A stretch of 64,000 bases of DNA from Lytechinus pictus (lineage: Eukaryota): NCBI RefSeq assembly GCF_037042905.1, contig NC_087249.1, positions 52,328,001 through 52,392,000 on the forward strand, read 5' to 3'. Under the pieces are notes generated by a model, which made no database searches, had not been told where the DNA came from, and saw nothing but the letters and a program-made list of their open reading frames with translations. Below are positions 6,416-51,500 of this stretch, one piece after another; positions within the stretch are counted from its first letter, which is position 1, and each line of letters starts with the position of its first letter. The position numbers and the translations under genes are program-made.

Positions 6416-9400
6416 GTAAGTTAGATAGGGGTTTGCAGTCCTGCTGTTGGTGATAAGTAAGATGTTGTCACACCCATAAGAGACTGATTTTCCATTTACA
6501 GCCAAAGCAAAATGGAAACTCTGTTTTGGTTCTTTACTTTCATGTTCAAATTCATTGAACTTACCTTTGATGTGTACATTTTCTTTGACAAAAGAGAATT
6601 TCCATTTGGATCAAGTTTGAAACGGAATTACAGGTCTTAAGAAACGGAAAAGGCCTTTTTGTAAACGTAAACTCGTTGTCCCTACACCTTGACACTTTAG
6701 CAAAGGTAAGCCATTGTATGAGCTCTAGACATTTTATCATTACAATTCAATTCTTGGAAGAAAAAAATCAAAGAAAAGGAAACTTGATATCTAGAAATTG
6801 TTACAAGCTGTTAACAAATGTTCTTGTCATAGAAATAAGATTAAATTGTCCTACATGTATATAGTGCACATTACACATGTGCATGTACAGTACATGTATG
6901 CTTTGTTGTTGAAATTTTATTTTCTTTAAAAGGTTGCTTTATGATCCATATTAATATCAATATCGATCTTTCACACTCTTTTTCAGGTGATCTTCAGTTC
7001 TACAAGTGACATTACAAATGATCGACAGACCAGCGTATGTTCATCAAGTGATTCTACCTCCATTGTTGACTCTATGAACCCAGAGGGCAGCAAAGCAGAG
7101 GAGAGTGGCGATATACCAACACTCAAAGAGTTTGACTTTGAGGGAGAAGAAGTAGACAGAGAGGTATGCATTGATTTGGGTCAGGATGTGGTGATGATGA
7201 TGGTGATGATGATGACGACGAGGACGACAAAGACGATGATGATGATGATGATGGTAGAGGCGGTGATGATGATGATGATGGNNNNNNNNNNNNNNNNNNN
7301 NNNNNNNNNNNNNNNNNNNNNNNNNNNNNNNNNNNNNNNNNNNNNNNNNNNNNNNNNNNNNNNNNNNNNNNNNNNNNNNNNNNNNNNNNNNNNNNNNNNN
7401 NNNNNNNNNNNNNNNNNNNNNNNNNNNNNNNNNNNNNNNNNNNNNNNNNNNNNNNNNNNNNNNNNNNNNNNNNNNNNNNNNNNNNNNNNNNNNNNNNNNN
7501 NNNNNNNNNNNNNNNGATGATGATAATGAAGAGGATGATGGGTCAGGATGTGGTGATGATGACGNNNNNNNNNNNNNNNNNNNNNNNNNNNNNNNNNNNN
7601 NNNNNNNNNNNNNNNNNNNNNNNNNNNNNNNNNNNNNNNNNNNNNNNNNNNNNNNNNNNNNNNNNNNNNNNNNNNNNNNNNNNNNNNNNNNNGAGTAATG
7701 ATGAAGACAAAAGTTCCTTTCGGCTATTCCCCTGATTTGTATGTCTTTATTCAAGCACCCTTGACCTCTTAACAAAAAAAAAACATCTTTGTTTTATTTT
7801 CAGGATGGTAAAGGTTTTAACTGGTATGACAGCCGTCATTCTTTGGAGGATATTGATTCAAGTGGAGTGACAAACCCTGATCATGAGGGATCCAAATATT
7901 CATCAGAAGATGAGGTAAGAACTTAGGGACAGATACAGGATTCCATGAATGAGAGGAGACAGTAATTATTATATTTCAATGCAAAAAATGAACACTTCTG
8001 AAACAAATAAGAATGTAATTCCCCCCCCCCCCATGAGAAACGTGAATAAACAAAACAACCCAAAAAGAAAAATAAAGGAAAAAATCCCAATGAATTTAAC
8101 TTCTGGTATAAGGGAATGTAATTGATAAGATTTTATGATTTGTATGTAACGAATTCAATCACAACCCACTGTTATTTAGTATATTGCACTTATAAAAACA
8201 AATCAGCAAAAAATTATTGTTCTTTAGTTCTAATTATATAGCAACAATGAGTATTTTCATTGGTTGAAGTGTTCAGTCATTATTTCTAGATTTCTGATTA
8301 GATGTTACGTTTGTTGGGGTGTTGCTTGGATATCTAGTTACGTAAGTTACAACTTCTCAGAATACAGTTTTGTGAAAGTTCTAGTGTTGATATAACAGCA
8401 TTATAACACCATTACCACAAATTACAACAAAAGTTTATAACATTTTTCATACTACCTTGGGCCTAAATATCTCTCACGATGCTTGGATCCGTAGTGAAAT
8501 TGAAGATACAGCTCTCCCATGTTTTATCTGATTGATTCTATAACTTCTGTCATACAGACAAGTATATCAGGCGCTGATGATAATGCACCCAGTCTTGAGA
8601 ATAGTCGTATCTACTCAGGAATGTCTCAAGAATTCATTCCTTCACCAGGGGGCAGCAGCGTCATCCGAAGAACAGCGTCAGGATCATTATCAAGGTCAGA
8701 TATATTTCACTTTCATGCAGAAGTTAAAATTCATATAAGATAGTTTCTTCAATCAGCTGTAACTTTTAACTTTTTTAATGTGTTTATGTAGATAACTTCA
8801 TCAATGATCAACATTTTTGTACGTCCAACCCCATGTAGATAACTCCTTTAAAGTAATCAACTGTTTTGTACATCCTGCCTCCATATACATGAGTTAAATC
8901 ACAGATCTTGGTGACATTGCCAATGGGAGATGTAAAATTGGGTTCCAAAAGGAACCGATCAAACTATACAAGGGCACTGCACAAAATCCACATTATCAAA
9001 TTGAACAATATTTGTTACACATGCTAGCTCCGATAACCTTCACTAAGCACATGTGAATGATTAAGAGATTGGTTGAACCACAGAGAGGCTATAGCCCCTC
9101 ACATCAATTGATTTCAGAATCCAAAGTCACAAAATGGCAAATGAACGACCAATGAAAATGAGATGGACTTCCCAGTTTATCATACATTGTTCACATGCAT
9201 GTTAAGAGATTGGCTTAATCACAAAGAAGCTACAGGAAGTTAAAATCAAAATGATTTTAAATGACTAGAACTATCACACAGCCACAAACAGATTTCCAGG
9301 GATGTCCCGGTAAGCAGGGGATAATCTGAACACGGCATTTATCTGTGTGTGGCTGAGAGAGGTACACACAGACACGCACCATGATCAGATTATCCCCCGC

Positions 9401-12400
9401 TTACCGGGACATCCCATGGCAAGTTTGCATGAGGCTGTGTGATTGTTCCTGTCATTAAAAATTTTGATGTTAATTTCCTGTAGCTCCTTTGTGATTGGGC
9501 CAATCTCTAAAAGATGTTCGTGAAGGACATGTGTAACAAACTGGGAAGTTTGTTTAAGTCCATCTCATTTTCATTGGTCGTTCATTTGCCATTTTGTGAC
9601 TTCTGATTCTGAAATCAATTGATGTGAGGGGCTATAGCCTCTCTGTGATTGAACCAATTTCTTAATTATTCACATGTGCTTTAATAGTACAGATTATTGA
9701 GGCTAGCTTGTGTAAAAATATTGTTCATTTTGACTGAGTGGAATTTGTGCAGTGCCCTTGTATATTTTGATCAGTTTCTTCTGGAACCCAGTTTACATAG
9801 CATTAGGATCTCAGTATTCAAATGCCCATGACTTTCTTATTATTTATTAAATCTTCCTCAAACTTTCAATGATCCGTTTTCTTTGATTTTTCTTTTATAT
9901 ATGAATTCACCTGGCTTCAAGGTTTGCATTTTCTCTTTAAATGTTACTGAAATTTTTTTAGAAGTTTGTTTCATGAATTTGTGTTTTCAATTTGAAGTTT
10001 GTTTCAATCATTTAAATGTTTTCTATCCTAGTGGTGGTAGTGATATTGATAGCATCACATCCCCGATATGCAACTCACCCACCGCCAACTCGTCCTTCAT
10101 CTACATCCCCGTCGATGAGGTGGAAGAAGCCTGGCAGAGTCACGTTGACGCGGTCATGGGGGATACGAGCGGTCGTTTCGCCGTCAATACGTTCCATATC
10201 TTCACACAGCTGTATAAGGTCATGCAGCAGAGGTTCTGCAACCTGACGCGAGAGGCTTGCAATTACCTGGGTGATAGGATGAGAAGCATAGCACTTCAGT
10301 TCCATATCCTTTTAATTGGATCTCTTTGTTGAATTTACAAACGAATTGACGCACAACTGATGACTGTTACTTGTGCTACATGATATGTAAGATATCTCTA
10401 TGTCACTGGCATCTAAAGTTGTGCGTAAAGTCATGTAAAGTCATGCATAAATTAGAAACGTGTGTAAAATCCTTTGTAAAGTATTGCGTCTTTTTTAAAC
10501 AGCTTTATGAAGCACTACTCTGATATCATTAGGCCACTTACAGAGAAATATGTGTTGTCTGTCACCCAGGATGGAAGAGTTTTATGACAAACAAAGTCTG
10601 TGTAATGCACTGTATATTCCATCCATTGACTAAATATTAATACAGGCATTGACTTGCTCTCCTTGGCCAAAATGCTAGGAGCTGAGTGAGAATGTCATTT
10701 GTTTGAAGAGTATGATAGCTAGCTTCACTGATGTAATTTTATTTTTACAGTTTATTTCCAGTGCTTTTGATGATTGTAATCCGTTGCCATGGAAGCTGAA
10801 AACCCAAGATTTTACAAGATGATTTCATTGGTCGAGGCATGCAAGCATTACTGAGATAATCTGCATTCAATTTTAACGTGATATGATGGAAAAAACAATA
10901 TTACTTCGATATTCGAATATAATGCACTATAATTTAAAATTACTATTCTTTATAAAGAATATACCCCCTCATATCTTCATCATAGTTCTTATGAAGAAAG
11001 AAATAATAATAATGGTGGCTACTTATATAGCTTACAGGTGCACCTGCTCCACCTGCTCATGGCGCTTTAACAATGACCCTGCTATTATTATCACCCCAGC
11101 TAAGCTAGGGAACGGATTAAGGCACACACAGCTTTTTGAGGAATTACTTCCTGCCGGTACCCATTTACATTACTGGGTCGCATGCAGCACACAGTGGATG
11201 AATTCCTTACTGAAGGAAATTACGTCATGGCTGGGATTTGAACCCACGACCCTCTGTTTCAAAGTCCAGAGACTAATCCACTGGGCCACAACGCTCCATG
11301 AGATTAACAATCCTTATTGTCCTTAACCTTCTGTTTCACTGAATACCCTTGAAGTCCTGAGCACCCATGCTCTTTGTCCATTTGTCTATGTGGACACCGA
11401 GACCTTGATGATGTGTAGATTACTAGACAGCCATAAATACTGTGTGCTTGAACTCAATGAACACTACGATACATACATCTCAAAAAGGGACCTTACGGTT
11501 GAGGTAAGTCAAACTCTTGGGTCTGAATTCATTAAGATGATTTTGAATCCTTGGTTTGAACGCATGATTTATGCAGATTTTGTGCATTTGTTCATCTTAA
11601 TTCTGCATGTATATTGACAAAACATCCCACGATAAATGAAAGCTTTTGTCAAAGCACTTTAATTGATGCTTGTGATAAAAGCGGGTGTTCATTATTGGAA
11701 GTTTTCTAAATATATGCATTGAATTAAGCATAATTTATGAAATCTACATAAACTATGATTTCAAATCAAGGATTCAAAATTACCTGTGTGAATTTGCTCT
11801 TAAGGGGGATATTGGTATAAACTTAAAATACACAGCAAGTTAGTCAATTTTAGGGCTGCAAATCAATCATAAACCGTACATTCAATTACAGTGAATTGTT
11901 GGCCTGTTCCTATCGTTTGCAAGTTTGTAATCTGAATTTGTAATCAATAGCAAATTAGTTTTGTGCAAAACCCTCTTAGACTGGATTTTTACTTTATGGT
12001 TTTTGTTCCATTGGTTGTTTGATTTTAGCATCCGTGTCTGGGTCCTGTAACACAAAAAATGTGAATTATCATGCAGTTAGTCAGGTTGATTGATTGCACA
12101 TAATGATCAATGCAATCAATCATAGAAATCAGCACTAAGAACAATCACTGAACTTTGTTTTATGAAATCCACCCTCTATCTCTACCAATGCTTCAGCTTT
12201 TGAACCACTTTTCACAGTTAGAATTTATTGCATGACATGTTTCAGATAATGCATCCATTATTGTTTTAACATTCTAATAAAACCGTTGATTCCATTGACT
12301 ATTCTGCAACATTATTTTGTAGTCATAATAGGTGATAGACAACTTTGATAATAGATTAGATTTTCTGTATGTTGCCACCATAGCAGTAATATATTGTTCT

Positions 12401-12902
12401 TAGTATTGTATTAACATATTCAATGAGAAAACATTATGTTTAACTTCAGGGTTTTTTTGTCTTCAGAATTTAGATTTTTATTCCATGTCAATATTCAAAG
12501 AAGATTGAATTATGCATGCTGTCGGTCTTTATTGTGAGTTTGTACTTATGAATCTTTTGAGAGTAAAACAGAAAGGTGATATTTGAAAAAAATATGTTTT
12601 TATCTTTTATAGTGCCTGGATTCAATCAAAGCATCTTTGAAGAGGCAAACTCTCGTAGCTCATGTAAGTATATCACTATGTGCGTTTAAGTTCTTAGGTT
12701 TCAATAACATTTGATTCCTTCATAGAGCATCAATCAATCTGGATTGTTAAAGTATTAGTGAAAACCATTTGAAATTTCATAGGAATCTAACAAGTCTAAT
12801 ATTTGAGTTCCAAGAGCACTTAACAGATTGCATAAATACTGTTTGATATTTGCAAATGTTATTTGATATTCTAATTTTGGTAATAGTGATAATGATGTTG
12901 AC

Positions 12903-12959
<57 letters not shown>

Positions 12960-15900
12960 AAAGGTGGGAATATTAATGATGATGATGTGGATCATCTTTA
13001 AGAAGTAATTTTAAAAGATTTTGAACCAGAATAAATAATTGCAGCACTTTATTTTATTTTATTGTTGTCCATACAGGATATAAATGGCCCTACAGGAGAA
13101 GAACAGGTAAAAACTCAATTTTTCCCTCCTTTCTTATTTGTGTTACTAAAATAGGATTGTTTTTTATTTATTTAAAGAATGACATGATGAATACCTTATA
13201 TAAGGAATCCACAGCGTGTTGTGTATTCTATGGGTTTCATGTGTCTTTGACAAACTACTCTTTTCATTTTGGAATCTCTCCAGTATCTCTGATTTCTCCT
13301 TTGTTTTCTGAGGGTTCTTTTATCCAGGTTGTTGGTTCTCATCATTTAACTCATTTGGGACAGTTGATTAAATGAAGCATTATTTGATCATCTTTTATTC
13401 TTCCATTTGCAATGTTATAATTTCTCATACTCTGCTTCATATTCTTTTGAAAGTTTATGTCTTATAAATGGATAGAGACTGATGTAGAATGTCCAGAGAA
13501 GTGAATAAAACTCTCCACTTTGCATATAAAATGGTTTTACCTTTCTATTGTTTTGTCAAATATGAGTGTAAATTGATTATTTTCCCGTAAACACTTTTTA
13601 ACTTTGAAGCGTACCTATGTAAATAAAATGGACAAAGTATTTTAAAGATTAGTTTTTCTGTAACATATTTTGTAATTGTTATTATGGCAGAGCATAAATA
13701 GATATTGAACCAAACCAAGATACATGTATGATATAATGAAATAAAACTATTCTTTAAGCAGAAGATAGGTGTTACACTTCCATTTATTTTCCACCTTTTT
13801 TATTTATTGGTTTGATTTTAAAATATTTATATATAAAGTGCACTAGCTTTTTTTTTAAATGATAATAAAGAAGAATTAAGCTCTACTTGCTATTATTTTG
13901 TTTTATTTATTCAGTATTTAAAAAAAAAAGATTAAAGTTTATTAAAAAAAGTTTACTTCCCTATAACCCCAATATATTTATAGATGTAGCAGGAAAAGCA
14001 AAGACTTATTAGGGACCAAGGATGATTTTGCTCTCACAATGTTAAAAAAGAAAAATACTGCCTGTGTATTAAGTGTCCATGTTATTCACTATTGGTTGAC
14101 TATTGGTCAATTATGAAAAGTATTTTGTAATGAAATTATGTAGGGGGAAACTCTGTAAACAAAATAATATTTTCTATTGGGTTTAAGTTTTAGCGCACAA
14201 TAATTTCATACATTGCAAAGTCTTGGAGATAACCCATGATGATAGATATTGATAGAAGAAGGATACCTATATTTTTTATGAGTCTTTTAACCCAGTCAAA
14301 GCAATGCATACCTTGTTTTTCTTTCAAGAGTAGAATTGAATTTTCTCATTAGAGAGTTCTGTAGTTAACAAACAGGTGATATGTTTTAAGAAATGATTGG
14401 AATATTCAAAATAACAAATGATAAATGGAAACCAATGATGCAAATGATGTTGCAGCCTTCAAAGCCCTCTGGTTTCACTTGTGAATGTGGACGAGATTAT
14501 CAACTTTATACTTTGCATTATTCCCCAGGGTGTGGAAAATGATTGAACCCAATGATCTTACACTCTACCTTTATATTAAGGGCCTCATTGATAACTGGAC
14601 TATTATTATTATCTTACAGATGCAAGGAAAATAAAATGAAAAAAATAAAATACACTTCGTAATATGTGAATGCATGTAGAGCATTACAAGGAAACTTGTG
14701 AGAAAAATTAACACTAAGACTTGTTTAGAGAACTTTACATATTCACTTTAAATCCTGTGGTCTCAAGTTTTTCGTCCTTTTTGATGATTTTTGACATCCA
14801 AATGTATTTTTGCCATGATTCAATAATAGTAATCATTGAAATAAGTGATATAACAATAATAATAATGATATAGATAATCATTGAAAGATAATGACCCACA
14901 TAACCATGCAAATGATTTGATTCAGTCATAGCAATACCTTGTTCACAGTTCAATCACAAGTGAAATGATCGGGCTTAAAACAGGAGCTAGCTAGTCCTGG
15001 CTAAATGTTGATGTATCATAATAGAGAGCTGTAAAACTAACCAATGCTTCTAATACTAACCCTCAAACCAAACACAAAACACTCTGGGTAACAGGAGAGG
15101 GTCCATATTAACCATGTAAGTATATGCCTTATATTGCATGGCTTCCTGCTTTGCTTGCTTTCTCGCCTGCTTCCCTAAAAAAATATGAAAATAAAAACAT
15201 TAACAGATGAATATTTAACAAAAACGCGAGCAACCAGCCAAGCAGGGATATTATATTTTTCATATGTCTAGTTATGTAATCTTTCTAGGTGCCATTTTCA
15301 ATTAGATATTAAATGTACATGTAGCCCCTTTTTCAAATCAAATACAAATATTAACCTTCACGCTAGTGAGTTGCAGTAAAATGCAGGAGAATTTTGATAT
15401 CTAGAAACCTGTCTAATTTTCTAACTTGATTTAATTTAGATGTTAAATATAGTCCCGTTTTTAATTAAATGCAAACACTAGACCTTAATGAAAGCTGATG
15501 AGTTTTAGTAAATGCATATACTGTATATCAGAAATATTGGAAGGAAATTAATCACATCGATGGAAATCATCAAATGAATATTTATGTTTAATATTTATAA
15601 TATTTTAAAATATCATTTCAATCAAATTTTTAAAAAATCTTTGTGGTCGTAATCTATCATAAAAGTACATTGAAAATATGCATTATTTTCTCCATAAATT
15701 TCAAGTCATCCAATACTCTTCTATTGATAGAATGCAACATAATTGCTTTATTCTGAGGATGAAAAATTTAATTTTTTTAATGGAATTGAATCATCTGTAT
15801 AGCATATGAAATTGCACTTAAAAAAAACATACTTGATAAGTTGTCCATTCCTAAAAAGAGGAAATGATTTATCATATTGAAGAAATTAAATTGAATTTCT

Positions 15901-31491: not shown

Positions 31492-34400
31492 ATGGCGGTC
31501 AATTGCTCTAAACTCTGCGGAAGCTGCTTAGGAGGGGAATGGAGAAAACACTCTCAGAAGATTTTTCTGGCCGTCTATTTAGTAATCGCAATCGTAGCGT
31601 TTGCTCTGACAATATGGGAGACCGTCGTCACCTCTATGAATTCTGATGATCCGGTAAACTATCTTTGGTTTGTTGCTGGGATATCGGCACAACTCGCTAC
31701 CGCCATCTCATTTTGGAATATCTTCAATCACCTGGTTTATTACTCAAAACCAAGCCAACAGAAATATATAGTCAGGTATGAATGGCATGAAATCCAATTC
31801 ATGATGCTAAATGCCGAATAGTGGATTTTATAGTAGGCCTTGTTCAATATGTTAAATGCAAGATGGTTCTAAGAAGGAATTAAGGATTTAAGTTACACAT
31901 GATCCCTAAAAGGGTACTCCAAAAGTATTTCAAGTATTAATATATTAATGTCAAATTAAAGCAAAACATTTAATAGGCTCTTTTGCGTTATAGAATACGT
32001 CACTGTAACATAAGACATTTCAGATTTTATGATTTTGAGAAAAGTTCATGCTCCAAAAGTGATTAACATGATTATTGGTTTATTTATTTTACATTCAAGT
32101 ACTGATGTCCATCGTTATCGGCAATTAAGTGTCGGGCGATATTTATGAAAAACAAATAGGATTAGTAAAAAAAAAAAAGATAAATAAATGAATATACCTG
32201 ATAATATGATTTTGATTCAAGGAAGCAAACTATGAATTCTTAATTAATGGTTGATGCAAAGACCGCCTTATATACATTGCTATGATATCACAGTCTTTTG
32301 GGTGGACTTTGGAAGGTATACAAGAAAATGAATATACACGTGTGATGATGATTTTATCTCATCTTATCTTCTTTTATTACAGAATGCTAGGTATTGTTCC
32401 CGCTCATAGTATCAATTGCGTGAGTATAATTGGGAAGGAGATGTTGTTTGTTATTATTTTCTTTCATTAAGTCATATAAGACTCATAAACAGTACGATTT
32501 TTATTAAGTTATTCGTCAGGGTGACTCAAGTAGATTTTTCATTTTCCGTTTTGTCCAAAAATTTGACAAATATCAAAACAGTCTGTTTGTCAAAAGAACT
32601 TCTATCACAAGCAGAAAAGCTTTAAACTTGTATCGTATATATGAACATTTGATCTTTTGAAGTCTTCAAAAATATGGACCCGTATTCTTATATCCAGTTA
32701 AACTGTGGTTTAAATCAGGATTGATTACGAGTACCCACATGGGACACATTCTATGAGCGCATTTGGCGCTCTAAAGATACTTTAATTATCTAGGAATTAT
32801 ATCATTTCTTCACCATAAGCATGAGAAAATATTTCAGTAAGTTGAATGAAGTATAAGCAAAGTTTTGTCGGTTGCAGGTAACTGACAAATTGACAAGCAA
32901 CAGGAAGGATATGTCTTCTCTCCAAAAGGGACATATTTTCATCCTGAATTCCAAATGAGGGAAGGGGTACAATACCGGGGGGTGGGCACTTTACATCCTC
33001 TGTATGTCAGTAAGGTATCCCTTTGTTGATGTACAACAATCTTTATTATTGTTATTCTCCAATGTAGTGGTTTTCGATCAAGTTCGTTAAGTCGGCCATC
33101 TATCTGGATACGATACGAAATTTCTACCAGGCTGTTGTTATCTACTGCTTTATGTCTCTTCTATTGGTTTACCTGAACGAAACATTCGACGATCTGGAGA
33201 AAATCCTCATCAGCAGACCGAAATTTAAACCACAACCACCGTGCTGCTGTGTAAAAGCCGTCCCAAACAAAAGGTATATTTTATATTTTAATCCTGTAAT
33301 CCTGTCCGAAAAAAATAATCGTCAAGGAGAAATGCGTCTATCAGAACGCCTGAATATGAATTTAATTCCATATCTTTATGTAGACAAATTACAAAATAAA
33401 ATGGGGTTCAATAGACAGTATATGTAAATAACATGTATATCATCTGCTGCTATGGTGATCCTTATGTTTTCAGGCCTATCCAAAATTGATTTATCATTTT
33501 ATCATGATCATAGGAGACTAAATTATACATGTACGCTTATGTTGTAAAGATCGGGTCTACTATTAACTAACTTATGGACACTATAAAAGGGCCCCGCAAC
33601 AAATACATTTTTTTTTTAAATGAATCATTGATTGGTCATGATATTTTGGTTATCATTTTTTTTATGAATGGTCACTATGATTCAAATCTATGCTTTCTAA
33701 CCTAGGGTATAATAAAAGACTTCGAATAATCCCTCCTTACTAAAAACGATCCTTATGTGTATATCATTTAAAAATATGTTTATGTAATCAGTATCTGTAT
33801 CTGTTTTGGTAGATTAATTGGAAGATGTCGAGCCGGTGTTCTTAACTATACTATACTCCATCCAATTATCACGATATTAACTATGTAAGTACAGCTCAGC
33901 TTTACATTATTCTTGTTGAAAGGTATATTGCTGTCGGAGTTGGTAAATGTAAACTATGTGTAAATCTTTATTTGGCAATTGCTTACTACTATCTGACTAT
34001 TTCGTGTTTCAATGATCTCGAATGTTCATTACCTTGATTTCTTGGCCATAAATTAGGTTATCGGGGGCCGGGTCAGGGTGAACGATGTTTGGAGAAATTG
34101 AAGATTATTCGAAGCTATCTGCAGTGTGTCGCGCTGTATACGTACTAAGAAGGTGATGCCCGATTTTGATTGGTGAAAAGTTAATCACGTGATAAAAGTT
34201 TTTGCCGGTCAAACACAAGATGGCGTTCTGTATTTCACTGCACATCATCAATGTTTGGAGTTAGAGAGAACTATGTGTATTATGCTGTACTATCTTCGAG
34301 GAAGAGTCGTTGTGTAGTCCTATACACTCTAAAAATGAATCAGTGCTAACTGCACTTCAGAGTGCTGATCCCCCCTTTTTTAGTGTACTATCAGATTAGA

Positions 34401-35762
34401 GTTTGTTGGTTATTATGTACAAATTAATAAAAAGTTCGTTGAACTGTATACTATCTTACCATGGCTAGTTTTCCTACTTATATTTTGAACAGAATAACAA
34501 CCGTTACAGGCCATTATACTGAAGGAAGTTTCATTGGATTATGGATCTGGTTCGCAATAATAGATGGGGTCTCCCAAGTTGTAAGAATTTATTATTGTTT
34601 CATTGTGCAAGGAATAATGTGTCGTATATTTAGGCCTACATAATATTTATTCCCAACTTCGAATAATAATGAAATTACACAAACGAATTGATTACAAAAT
34701 TGAAATTAAATGAAATTTAGTTTACTGCCAAGGAAGAAGAGTACACTTTATTACTTTAATCATGATAGCCCCCCCCAAAAAAAAAAAAAAGGGTGGGAAT
34801 GCTCTTGGTAGACTATATCTTAATAGCAAAGATGATTACGTGTTGTTGTTTTTTGTCAGATAAACGTCACTAAAGTAATCAAAATTCATCACATTCGACA
34901 GAGGGGAGAATGCAAATTTTCTAAGAAATAATACAACCTTCTTATTTTGTTTGACATTGGCTTTCATAAGGGATGGTAAATCCTCTACTCCCACCCCCCC
35001 CCCCTTCCCCAATCAGGTGGCGCCGCCGTTTATTTTATTATTAGCTTGTTCATTAATTACTTTAAATAATGTTTCAAACTAAACACATCACCAATTCTAC
35101 ACACCAACGTTCTCACGGGGAAAATGTCTATTATTAAAAAAATCCTGATAATTAGTATATAAATAACCAAATTTAAAATTCAAATTGGATTTTATTTCCA
35201 GCAGAAAATATAATACATTAAACATTACATACGTGCATAATTACATTCGATGACATAAATGAAATTCAAGATACAAATAATGTGACAAACACAGAAAATG
35301 TTTGTAGATAAATAATGAAAATATAAAATTGAAATAAAGTAGGCATATTTATCTTATTTCCTCACTATATCCCTTCATCTTTGAGTGGGCGATGTACTGT
35401 TTGATGGTATTCTATCGAGCCACAAAGGAGGAACTAGCTGGGTTGCATCCAATCAGTAAACTAATCACAGTCCAGTTAACCATCTTCGGTGCTTTCTTCC
35501 AATCATTCATCATCGCTCTGGTCATTGGTCTCAGCAATCCAAACCTTGATCCAGAGAACTGGGGCTATGATGATCAGCAGAAACTGCGCTTCTCAAGATT
35601 CATACAGGTTCGTGAATTTTATTGTTTAACGGAGGAACTTGGATTAGTTGGATTTGAGGGGGTAACGCGCCTATCCAGTACCCAAATGGTTTTTGAAGTG
35701 ACAGCACCTCGTGCATGAAAAAAATACTGCTATAATGATAAAGATGAAGATGATAATAATAA

Positions 35763-48500: not shown

Positions 48501-51500
48501 ATTCAAATTTGTGGATTGCACCCAGTAAATAAAGAAAGAGCCGCGACCAAGGTCACCATGATAATACAAGTAGGCTGCCTCCACCATTGGCAACTGAGTC
48601 CATCATTAGAAAAAAAAATTATAGTGTGCATAGAAAGTAATGATTGTAATAATAACAATGTGTTTGATATTGATAATAATAGACTAGATAATAATGGTAA
48701 CAATAATACCAATACAATTTATGTATGTGTTTTGTATCCACTCTACATAGTGGTCAAGCCACTTAATTATTGTCATTATTATCGTTGGCATTGTTAGAAA
48801 AGTCTCACATGAGTGTAATATCCTTTGCCAGTAATATTATATTATATTACTAGGACAGTACCTGAACTGAATGATGATCCTAAGCACTGTTTGCAGACAT
48901 TGAAATTTGTGAGATATTTCCTTTTTTTGAGCAAGCGCCATGAGCGCCCAGCTGAGGCGTATACCGGCGCTTTACAAGAACCCATCATCATCAGTGTAAT
49001 CAAAAGTTTTGGAATAAAGTTATTCTTTCATATAGCCTAAACATCTGATCATATTGTTCCTTTTATTCCTATTAGTTATGGGATCTGATGATGCCTAATA
49101 CCAAACTAGAGAAACGCATCACAAGGCAATGGACTGAACTTGGTTTCCAAGGTGATGATCCAGCGACGGACTTCAGAGGCATGGGTGAGTAGACATTATC
49201 CACAAGACTTCAATCTTAGGTAACGAGCATCCTCAAACTTACTCATTTTTCTAGTACTAGTACGTTATCTTTTTTTCTTTTGTTTTTTATTCTGTTGACT
49301 TGAATTCAGATTACAGCTTAACCCAGTCAATACTTCATTAATTAGCGGCATCTCCTGGTCAGCTTCAAGATAATTAATACTAGTAGCACACTGTATTTAC
49401 GGTAGATACAATTTCATGAAGGTGCACTAATACCATTACCTTGGCTTTAGCTTGAGCTGCTGCTTCCAACGTTCAGTGAATGTATTCAAATACTTCATTG
49501 AAAAAAAAAATCCTGCTGGGTACCCATTCACCTTACCAGGGTTGAGTGCAGCACATTGTGGATCAATTTCTTGCTAAACAAAAACATGCCATGGCTGAAA
49601 GATGAATCAGAACCGTGATACATTCTTGAGCATCCCTTTCTATTCTTCCTCCATCTCAGATAAAAACCTTATGGTGATGTTTATTAATTTCATTTAATTT
49701 CATTTTATATAATAATGTTTCTTTTTCTCTTTTGTTTCTTTCCTAGGAATGCTTGGACTTAATAACTTAATGTAAGTATCACATGATTGAGTCTTTGTTT
49801 TAATTTTGCACCTCTATTTCTTCATGAGAAATTGACAGTGAAACTTTGGTACAACTCATAATATTTCTTTTTTTCTGGAATCCAGGCGATATTTTGATTT
49901 ATATCCTGGATGAATCAAATCCTGTATAGCAGTGGGTTAATTAGCCAAGAATTTAGACAATATGGCGTATCGGGCCAAATTTTTATAATTTTTTTTTCAA
50001 GTTGCAAGTGAGTGAATCGAGTGAGCACAAATTTCAAAATTTGTATTACAAAAATCAAATTTTGTGATAGATTTTTCAGAAAATGATATGAGACTTCACC
50101 TTTCTCTTTTTCTTTCCTTTTCTCTTTTTTTCTTGGTCGTGAAAGTTTGTAGGAGCAAGCGCCTCCCAAGCCCCCCCCCCCCCCATCTGTATGCCACTGC
50201 TGTATAATGATTGGTTCAAATAACATCTTGTGACCAAACATATTCCAGCTATAATGCCCATGATGAAAATTTGCTATGCCATGATGTCAATGATGAAATA
50301 ATGCACTCTTCTATCATCATAGATTTAGAAATCAACAACTTTATTTACCATTATATTTTCATGCAGATTTTTTGCTGAGAATTACAATGGAGTGGCAAGG
50401 CAAACTCTGATTCACTCTCAACATCCTAAATTATGGTAAGATTTATTCATTTTATTTTAAGTAATGATGTTGATCACTCCTATATTTGTCACATGTTACT
50501 CTTGTTACTTATATTTTTACCTTTGTCATGGCTGAGACACCAAGTAAATTAGCTCAAGCATAGACTGAGATTGGCACATGTAAACAAATTTTCTTGCAGT
50601 AAGCCATTAGTACCATAGTGGGAATTGAACCCTAGACCTTATGGTTCCAAATTTCTGGACCCCCCCAAAAAAAAAAAAATAATAATAAATAAATAAATAA
50701 AATCTCATACAAGTGGAAGAAACTTGTATGTAAAGAGTATCATGCATTTATGTGAGTAAATATCTGGGCCCCGTTTCATAAGTTACCATTATGGTAACTT
50801 TGCCATCCAATGGTAACTACCATGGTAATGCTGATCAACAGCCAATCAGAATCAAGGATTCCATGCAAGTTACCTTTGCATGGCAAAGTTACCATGATGG
50901 TAAGTTTTATGCAACGGGGTCCAGGTCATTGGATCAAGGTCAAAATCATTTCGGGTTTTAAAAACTTGTTAAAAATTGATATTTTCTCCTAACTTCAAAA
51001 GTGATTTGATCAAATCCATTACTTTCCTATTTTTGAAACTTAGAGATGAATAAAGTACAAATTTCAAGTTTAAATATGAAAAGCTGAAGTTATCTCAAAT
51101 AGCCTTTGAGCTTGACTCAGTAACAATTTCACATGATTTGTGATATCTGTGCCCCATCTCATATAAGTTTCTTAATATAATAAGATACTTTAGAAATGTA
51201 TATGTATGTCAATTATATGTTACAAGTATGAACATTTTGTCCAAATTTATGAAACTGATGATTTCACCATGATTGATTGTTGTATTGCATTGCATATTGC
51301 AGGCGAGACTACCGGGGCATTCCCAATCCTTCTTGCTTCTTATTTAAGTTTCCAATCACCCTCTGTTCATTTATGATTCAAATATCCAGGTACTCCTATG
51401 CTGTAGTTGGTATCAACTTGACCAACCTAGCATATGATCTACTAAAAGATGGACAGCTCAGGGAATATTTCTACTACACTGTAACGGGAGAACCAGCCAT

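Follow-up and report, generated by a model that had tools for sequence, protein, structure and literature searches.

We conclude with high confidence that positions 10304-11339 of the window (the whole 64,000-nucleotide stretch of Lytechinus pictus DNA analysed here) form a genuine U12-type AT-AC intron of the furry gene, one that is old and precisely removed, and that in the sampled RNA behaves as a constitutive intron with no hint of a switch. Its assignment to the U12-type AT-AC class within the Fry_C region, first proposed in a sequence-only reading, is supported by its signals, by an RNA junction, by orthologues and by the matching boxes of the snRNAs (Table 1).

Table 1. Features of the furry intron and of the orthologous position in other animals
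Feature	Position	Strand	Sequence or structure	Basis
Furry coding exon, 272 nt	10032-10303	+		Pfam Fry_C (PF19421) profile 354-423, E 4e-20; boundaries fitted to RefSeq P0121
AT-AC intron, phase 1, 1036 nt	10304-11339	+		RNA joint in 4 runs and RefSeq protein fit
U12-type 5' splice site	10304-10312	+	ATATCCTTT	Sequence, read directly
In-frame TGA met on retention	10330-10332	+		Frame reading; potential consequence
Dispersed SINE-like repeat	11100-11300 (tested stretch; within 11000-11300)	.		Genome copies
U12 branch-point sequence	11320-11327	+	TCCTTAAC	Sequence, read directly
AC 3' terminal dinucleotide	11338-11339	+	AC	Sequence, RNA joint, RefSeq protein fit
Next furry coding exon, 164 nt	11340-11503	+	GTAAGT donor after exon	Pfam Fry_C profile 426-475, E 2.3e-13
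Crinoid Anneissia japonica intron, 660 nt	L012 ~34372-35032		ATATCCTTA ... GCCTTAAC, 10 nt, AC	XP_033097375.1 model
Branchiostoma floridae model P0003	End of model		...SQF/HILF	Translation of C/ATATCCTTT
ORF P0001 (73% identical to urchin)	End of ORF		QF/YILF	
Eukaryotic contig L002			GTATCCTTG ... TCCTTGAC ... AG	GT-AG U12 subtype
Eukaryotic contig L003			GTATCCTTT ... TCCTTAGG ... AG	GT-AG U12 subtype
Bird FRY	L001 45910-46059		Position within continuous exon, no intron	
Carp FRYL	L004 4287-4463		Position within continuous exon, no intron	
Several fish ORFs			Position within continuous exon	
Contig L005			Position within continuous exon	

A single joint connects two Fry_C exons

RNA was mapped on positions 7700-12400, using transcript contigs from two studies (X1 and X15) and raw reads from a third (X19 and X20, rRNA-depleted stranded total-RNA runs of one study, with ~6% of each run sampled). 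A joint skipping exactly 1036 nt was reported at 10302/11339, where one letter fits either side, and is equivalent to 10303^11340. This joint was present in one contig each of X1 and X15, in 11 reads with 9 different starts in X19 and in 20 reads with 13 different starts in X20, and all of these reads were oriented like the neighbouring exons, as for mRNA from the + strand. The junction that had been predicted from the sequence was thus found in four runs from three studies. Competing joints between exons 10032-10303 and 11340-11503 were absent from X1, X15, X19 and X20, and with them the reads from other GT-AG sites that would have spoken against the AT-AC intron. The AT-AC junction was covered by 11 and 20 reads, compared with 6/16 and 11/7 at the two upstream GT-AG junctions, indicating that it is used at an equal level. 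The RNA joints also delimit the upstream GT-AG intron (8695-10031), and transcript contigs span 11339-11503. As the RNA joint fits either AT..AC termini or a CA..CA pair shifted by one base, AT-AC is the probable form by consensus and by the fit to the protein.

Several single-letter differences separate the RNA from the assembly. G>T at 8677 was seen in all reads, and C>T at 10267, 11431 and 11467 in part of the reads. The latter three changes are synonymous in frame and therefore look like ordinary polymorphisms.

Splicing at this joint produces an uninterrupted protein. The upstream exon ends with ...GDRMRSIALQF and a C at 10303, the first base of a split Leu codon; the downstream exon opens with the TG that completes Leu and continues with NTLEVL...CPFVYVDTETL (NTLEVLSTHALCPFVYVDTETL...). 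Across the join, Fry_C remains collinear, the two profile segments of Table 1 being linked by the split codon and an Asn, and the Fry_C exon scores of 72.3, 50.0 and 48.7 bits compare with a gathering cut-off of 25.9. When the upstream exon was used as query, an exhaustive phmmer search returned furry proteins, and the matches of a word-based protein search were exclusively echinoderm furry proteins. The spliced peptide of 145 residues aligned without gaps across the junction to furry of a crinoid, a bird, a squirrel, fishes and a sponge, and matched the RefSeq 'protein furry homolog' of both Lytechinus pictus (P0121) and L. variegatus (P0120) with 100% identity. The last exon (398 aa) showed 100% identity to the former and 94.6% to the latter.

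When splice sites within 30-40 nt on either side were searched by brute force, the AT-AC pair was the sole in-frame solution reproducing the RefSeq protein, and no GT-AG alternative giving the same protein was found, as the sequence-only reading had stated. Its in-frame joining of RSIALQF to LNTLEVL..CPFVYVDTETL is likewise borne out by the frame, the collinearity of Fry_C and the RefSeq identity. The 100% match across the junction also means that the public annotation already contains the AT-AC splice. The expectation that gene predictors commonly miss such introns did not hold for furry: the junction is crossed gaplessly by the RefSeq models of seven echinoderms, L. pictus and L. variegatus among them.

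Signals and class of the intron

The donor ATATCCTTT agrees with the U12 consensus /RTATCCTT(T) at 9 of 9 positions, and over positions -3 to +9 the splice site is letter for letter the 12-mer given for the SCN8A minor intron (Olthof 2019 supplement). At the other end, TCCTTAAC fits the TCCTTRAY box found ~10-15 nt from the 3' splice site. The branch A is the second A of this motif (11326), 13 nt from the last intron base at 11339, and the stretch that follows contains no long polypyrimidine tract. All earlier sequence statements about the U12 donor, the branch site and the AC acceptor were correct. U12 introns are biased against phase 0, and the phase of the furry intron is consistent with this known bias (PMC7367187).

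The motifs themselves are not rare. RTATCCTTT was observed twice in the window against 2.4 expected, that is, with no excess over chance, and a branch site followed by AC was likewise observed twice against 0.63 expected, which we do not treat as above chance. Their significance comes from their location at RNA-verified exon ends, the motif counts by themselves being unexceptional. The second exact ATATCCTTT of the window lies at 48818-48826 on the + strand, and the window holds no further copies.

With motif counts no higher than in shuffled sequence, one could suppose that there is no real intron here and that an artefact of assembly, a pseudogene or two motifs paired by chance have been taken for one. 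However, spliced reads and contigs come from three studies, the spliced product is identical to the RefSeq protein, polymorphisms in the two exons are synonymous only, and a crinoid has the orthologous intron. We regard this explanation as already refuted and its remaining probability as negligible.

A genuine intron with AT-AC termini could still belong to either spliceosome. U2-type AT-AC introns are known as a small class, and the termini alone leave the type undecided, but splicing of the furry intron by the major (U2-type) spliceosome is very unlikely given its remaining features. The donor follows the U12 consensus throughout and is not of the ATAAGT-like U2 form, and the consensus branch site stands 13 nt from a 3' end that lacks a long polypyrimidine tract. 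Moreover, orthologues swap AT-AC for GT-AG termini yet keep the TATCCTT and TCCTTRAY boxes, and switching between AT-AC and GT-AG with the boxes retained is the pattern of U12 introns.

The L. pictus genome also encodes the RNAs that a U12-type intron would engage. Loci scoring above the Rfam gathering score were found for full-length U12 (four loci, 109-115 bits), U6atac (two, 99-135 bits), U11 (three, 100-112 bits) and U4atac (two, 92 bits). The genome's own U12 snRNA has GUAAGGA, which can pair with TCCTTAAC leaving one A bulged, and ATATCCTTT is complementary both to its U6atac (AAAGGA) and to the 5' end of its U11 (AAAAAGGG). In the proposed mechanism, U11 and then U6atac would pair with the ATATCCTTT donor, while U12 would pair with TCCTTAAC so that the branch adenosine bulges 13 nt upstream of the AC acceptor. 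From this complementarity we infer that the furry intron probably depends on the minor spliceosome.

Distribution of the intron among animals

Comparing the position and type of the intron across orthologues, a check that the sequence-only reading had proposed, gave AT-AC in a crinoid, GT-AG of the U12 subtype in two contigs and absence in vertebrates. The intron of the crinoid A. japonica interrupts the identical codon in the identical phase as the urchin intron and has AT-AC termini. Its donor has A at +9 where the urchin has T, and its branch box is GCCTTAAC. It measures 660 nt compared with 1036 nt in the urchin, and the urchin surplus is largely the dispersed repeat. The contigs L002 and L003, both animal, share the donor GTATCCTT at the furry site, with TCCTTGAC or TCCTTAGG as branch sequence.

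In amphioxus, a gene model carries a probable trace of the intron. The tail HILF of P0003 equals the translated donor, indicating that the amphioxus gene predictor ran into the same donor, and the read-through tails HILF (P0003) and YILF (P0001) are both translations of ATATCCTT. This translated read-through implies that amphioxus probably has a U12 intron at the same site.

Vertebrate orthologues carry the same conserved Fry_C protein block as the urchin. Bird FRY and carp FRYL differ in being intronless at the codon concerned and in having GT-AG introns ~27 codons upstream and ~22 codons downstream of it. The minor introns tabulated for human and mouse in MIDB (Olthof et al. 2019, PMC6717393) include none from FRY or FRYL; control genes were present in these tables, whose alphabetical order goes from FRA10AC1 to GAK. 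Whether the orthologous intron exists in vertebrate FRY/FRYL, a question that the sequence-only reading had left open, is thus answered negatively by bird FRY, carp FRYL and the MIDB lists. A U12-like donor in bird FRY (L001 7590) was rejected, as it is not at an exon boundary. A literature search linking FRY, FRYL or furry to U12 or minor introns found nothing relevant, its matches being names of authors or mentions in other contexts.

Other introns of the region also vary in position. Bird FRY (L001 38620-46060) and carp FRYL (L004 3409-4670) share two GT-AG introns, near residues 63/64 and 113 of the 145-residue query. The urchin and the crinoid have neither of these two vertebrate introns, and L002 and L003 carry the one at about residue 113 in addition to the U12 intron. 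Between lineages, the positions of introns in Fry_C have been reshuffled. For the U12 intron, the simplest reading of the distribution is that it is older than the echinoderm-chordate split and was probably lost on the vertebrate stem before the FRY/FRYL duplication.

Retention in the sampled RNA

A retained intron would encode nine residues (HILLIGSLC) before the in-frame stop, and the sequence confirms the earlier statement that retention reads into this TGA. The sequence-only reading had suggested a rate-limiting switch or gate. In such a regulated bottleneck, slow or conditional splicing would retain the intron and yield either a furry protein cut at residue 2720 of 3339, without the remainder of Fry_C, or a target of NMD, so that furry dosage would be tuned by minor-spliceosome activity. 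Several observations are in keeping with this. The TGA follows after nine codons and lies far upstream of later exon junctions, and the U12 type is kept in echinoderms and other lineages. For some minor introns in human cells, splicing is slow and responds to the level of U6atac (PMC3728624), although how far this applies to minor introns in general is uncertain and debated (PMC4066798). Finally, X1 contains a 167-nt contig from the intron (10455-10620) with a depth of 3.3 compared with 71.8 for the mRNA contig, or ~3-5% of mRNA depth; this contig may stem from small amounts of either unspliced RNA or DNA.

The raw reads argue against such a role. In the non-repeat intron bins (10369-10996), sense depth was 0 in X19 and ~0.06 in X20, where it came to 0.23 in a single bin, whereas exon bins had depths of 12.9-17.9 in these two rRNA-depleted libraries. 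Depth was also 0 in the unique bins of a GT-AG intron nearby (8014-8484). A rough Poisson bound from X19 and X20 places intron retention below ~3-4%, and retained transcripts were not seen in either run. Retention clearly above that of neighbouring major introns, which would mark a regulated switch intron, was thus not observed in the one raw-read study, and the junction counts equal those of the neighbouring GT-AG introns. Furthermore, vertebrate FRY and FRYL function without the intron, indicating that it is not intrinsic to the regulation of furry, and conservation of the U12 type is usual for minor introns and alone implies no switch. The gate is therefore unsupported, as junction counts match those of GT-AG neighbours and intron depth is ~0 against ~13-18 in exons, and we consider a regulated bottleneck improbable. 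In the sampled RNA, the furry intron behaves as a constitutive intron that is cleanly and efficiently spliced.

There is a wider evolutionary version of the switch idea. If the U12 type has been kept since before the echinoderm-chordate split, furry expression in non-vertebrate deuterostomes would thereby respond to the activity of the minor spliceosome; the deletion on the vertebrate stem would have ended this coupling, and retention under conditions outside those sampled would remove the C-terminal ~620 residues or trigger NMD. We give this scenario as little credence as the bottleneck itself.

The high RNA depth in one part of the intron has another source. A dispersed repeat makes up the 3' third of the intron and carries a tRNA T-arm-like motif in antisense; ARAGORN called no tRNA in it. 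A first look found at least 2,742 candidate copies in the genome, and 40 scored copies had 90-95% identity. RNA depth over the repeat was very high on both strands and derives from other copies. The repeat stops ~20 nt before the U12 branch site and leaves splicing undisturbed.

Relation to known minor introns and place in the gene

By these measures, the furry intron is an unremarkable, constitutively spliced representative of a well-known class and probably uses the ordinary minor-spliceosome pathway. It has the AT-AC termini and the exact donor 12-mer of a minor intron that MIDB lists for SCN8A (Olthof et al. 2019, PMC6717393). Like animal U12 AT-AC introns, it has a TCCTTAAC-type branch box near the 3' end, a phase other than 0 and, as the gene's one minor intron, many major introns beside it. 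What differs from SCN8A is the host gene, as FRY and FRYL are not minor-intron genes in human or mouse; there is otherwise nothing unusual about it. It also resembles the 'minor introns as molecular switches' model (Younis et al. 2013, PMC3728624) in that the gene has a single minor intron whose retention would expose a premature stop, but departs from that model in showing no excess retention in the sampled RNA.

Echinoderm furry, and apparently amphioxus furry as well, contains a minor intron that the vertebrate genes lack, which gives one dated case of such an intron being lost on the vertebrate stem. New here are its explicit classification as U12-type, the confirmation of its splicing by RNA and its phylogenetic pattern. 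The result also marks the point at which furry is cut short by older gene models and ORF callers. The annotation itself is unchanged, because the junction is already in the RefSeq models; the practical value is accordingly small, and a special regulatory role receives no support.

To place the intron within the gene, RefSeq P0121 was mapped on the window together with 120 kb fetched upstream. The furry gene extends over ~74 kb and comprises ~55 coding exons and ~54 introns. Among these, 10304-11339 is the single U12-like intron, and every other resolved intron is GT-AG; one minor intron among ~54 is the usual architecture of minor-intron genes. Three upstream junctions (gene coordinates 85134/85893, 99003/99419 and 105570/105869) were left unsolved by the script, and these are without a U12-like donor motif. 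Four other [AG]TATCCT[TC] motifs occur in furry, all of them inside introns and none at an exon end.

Downstream of the U12 intron, furry has small exons of 17 and 10 codons with GT-AG sites on either side (12613-12663, 13077-13106, ~15036-15170). On the upstream side, furry exon 6987-7163 is closely followed by two runs of N (7282-7515 and 7565-7692), with highly repetitive low-complexity sequence coding for Asp, His and Met around them.
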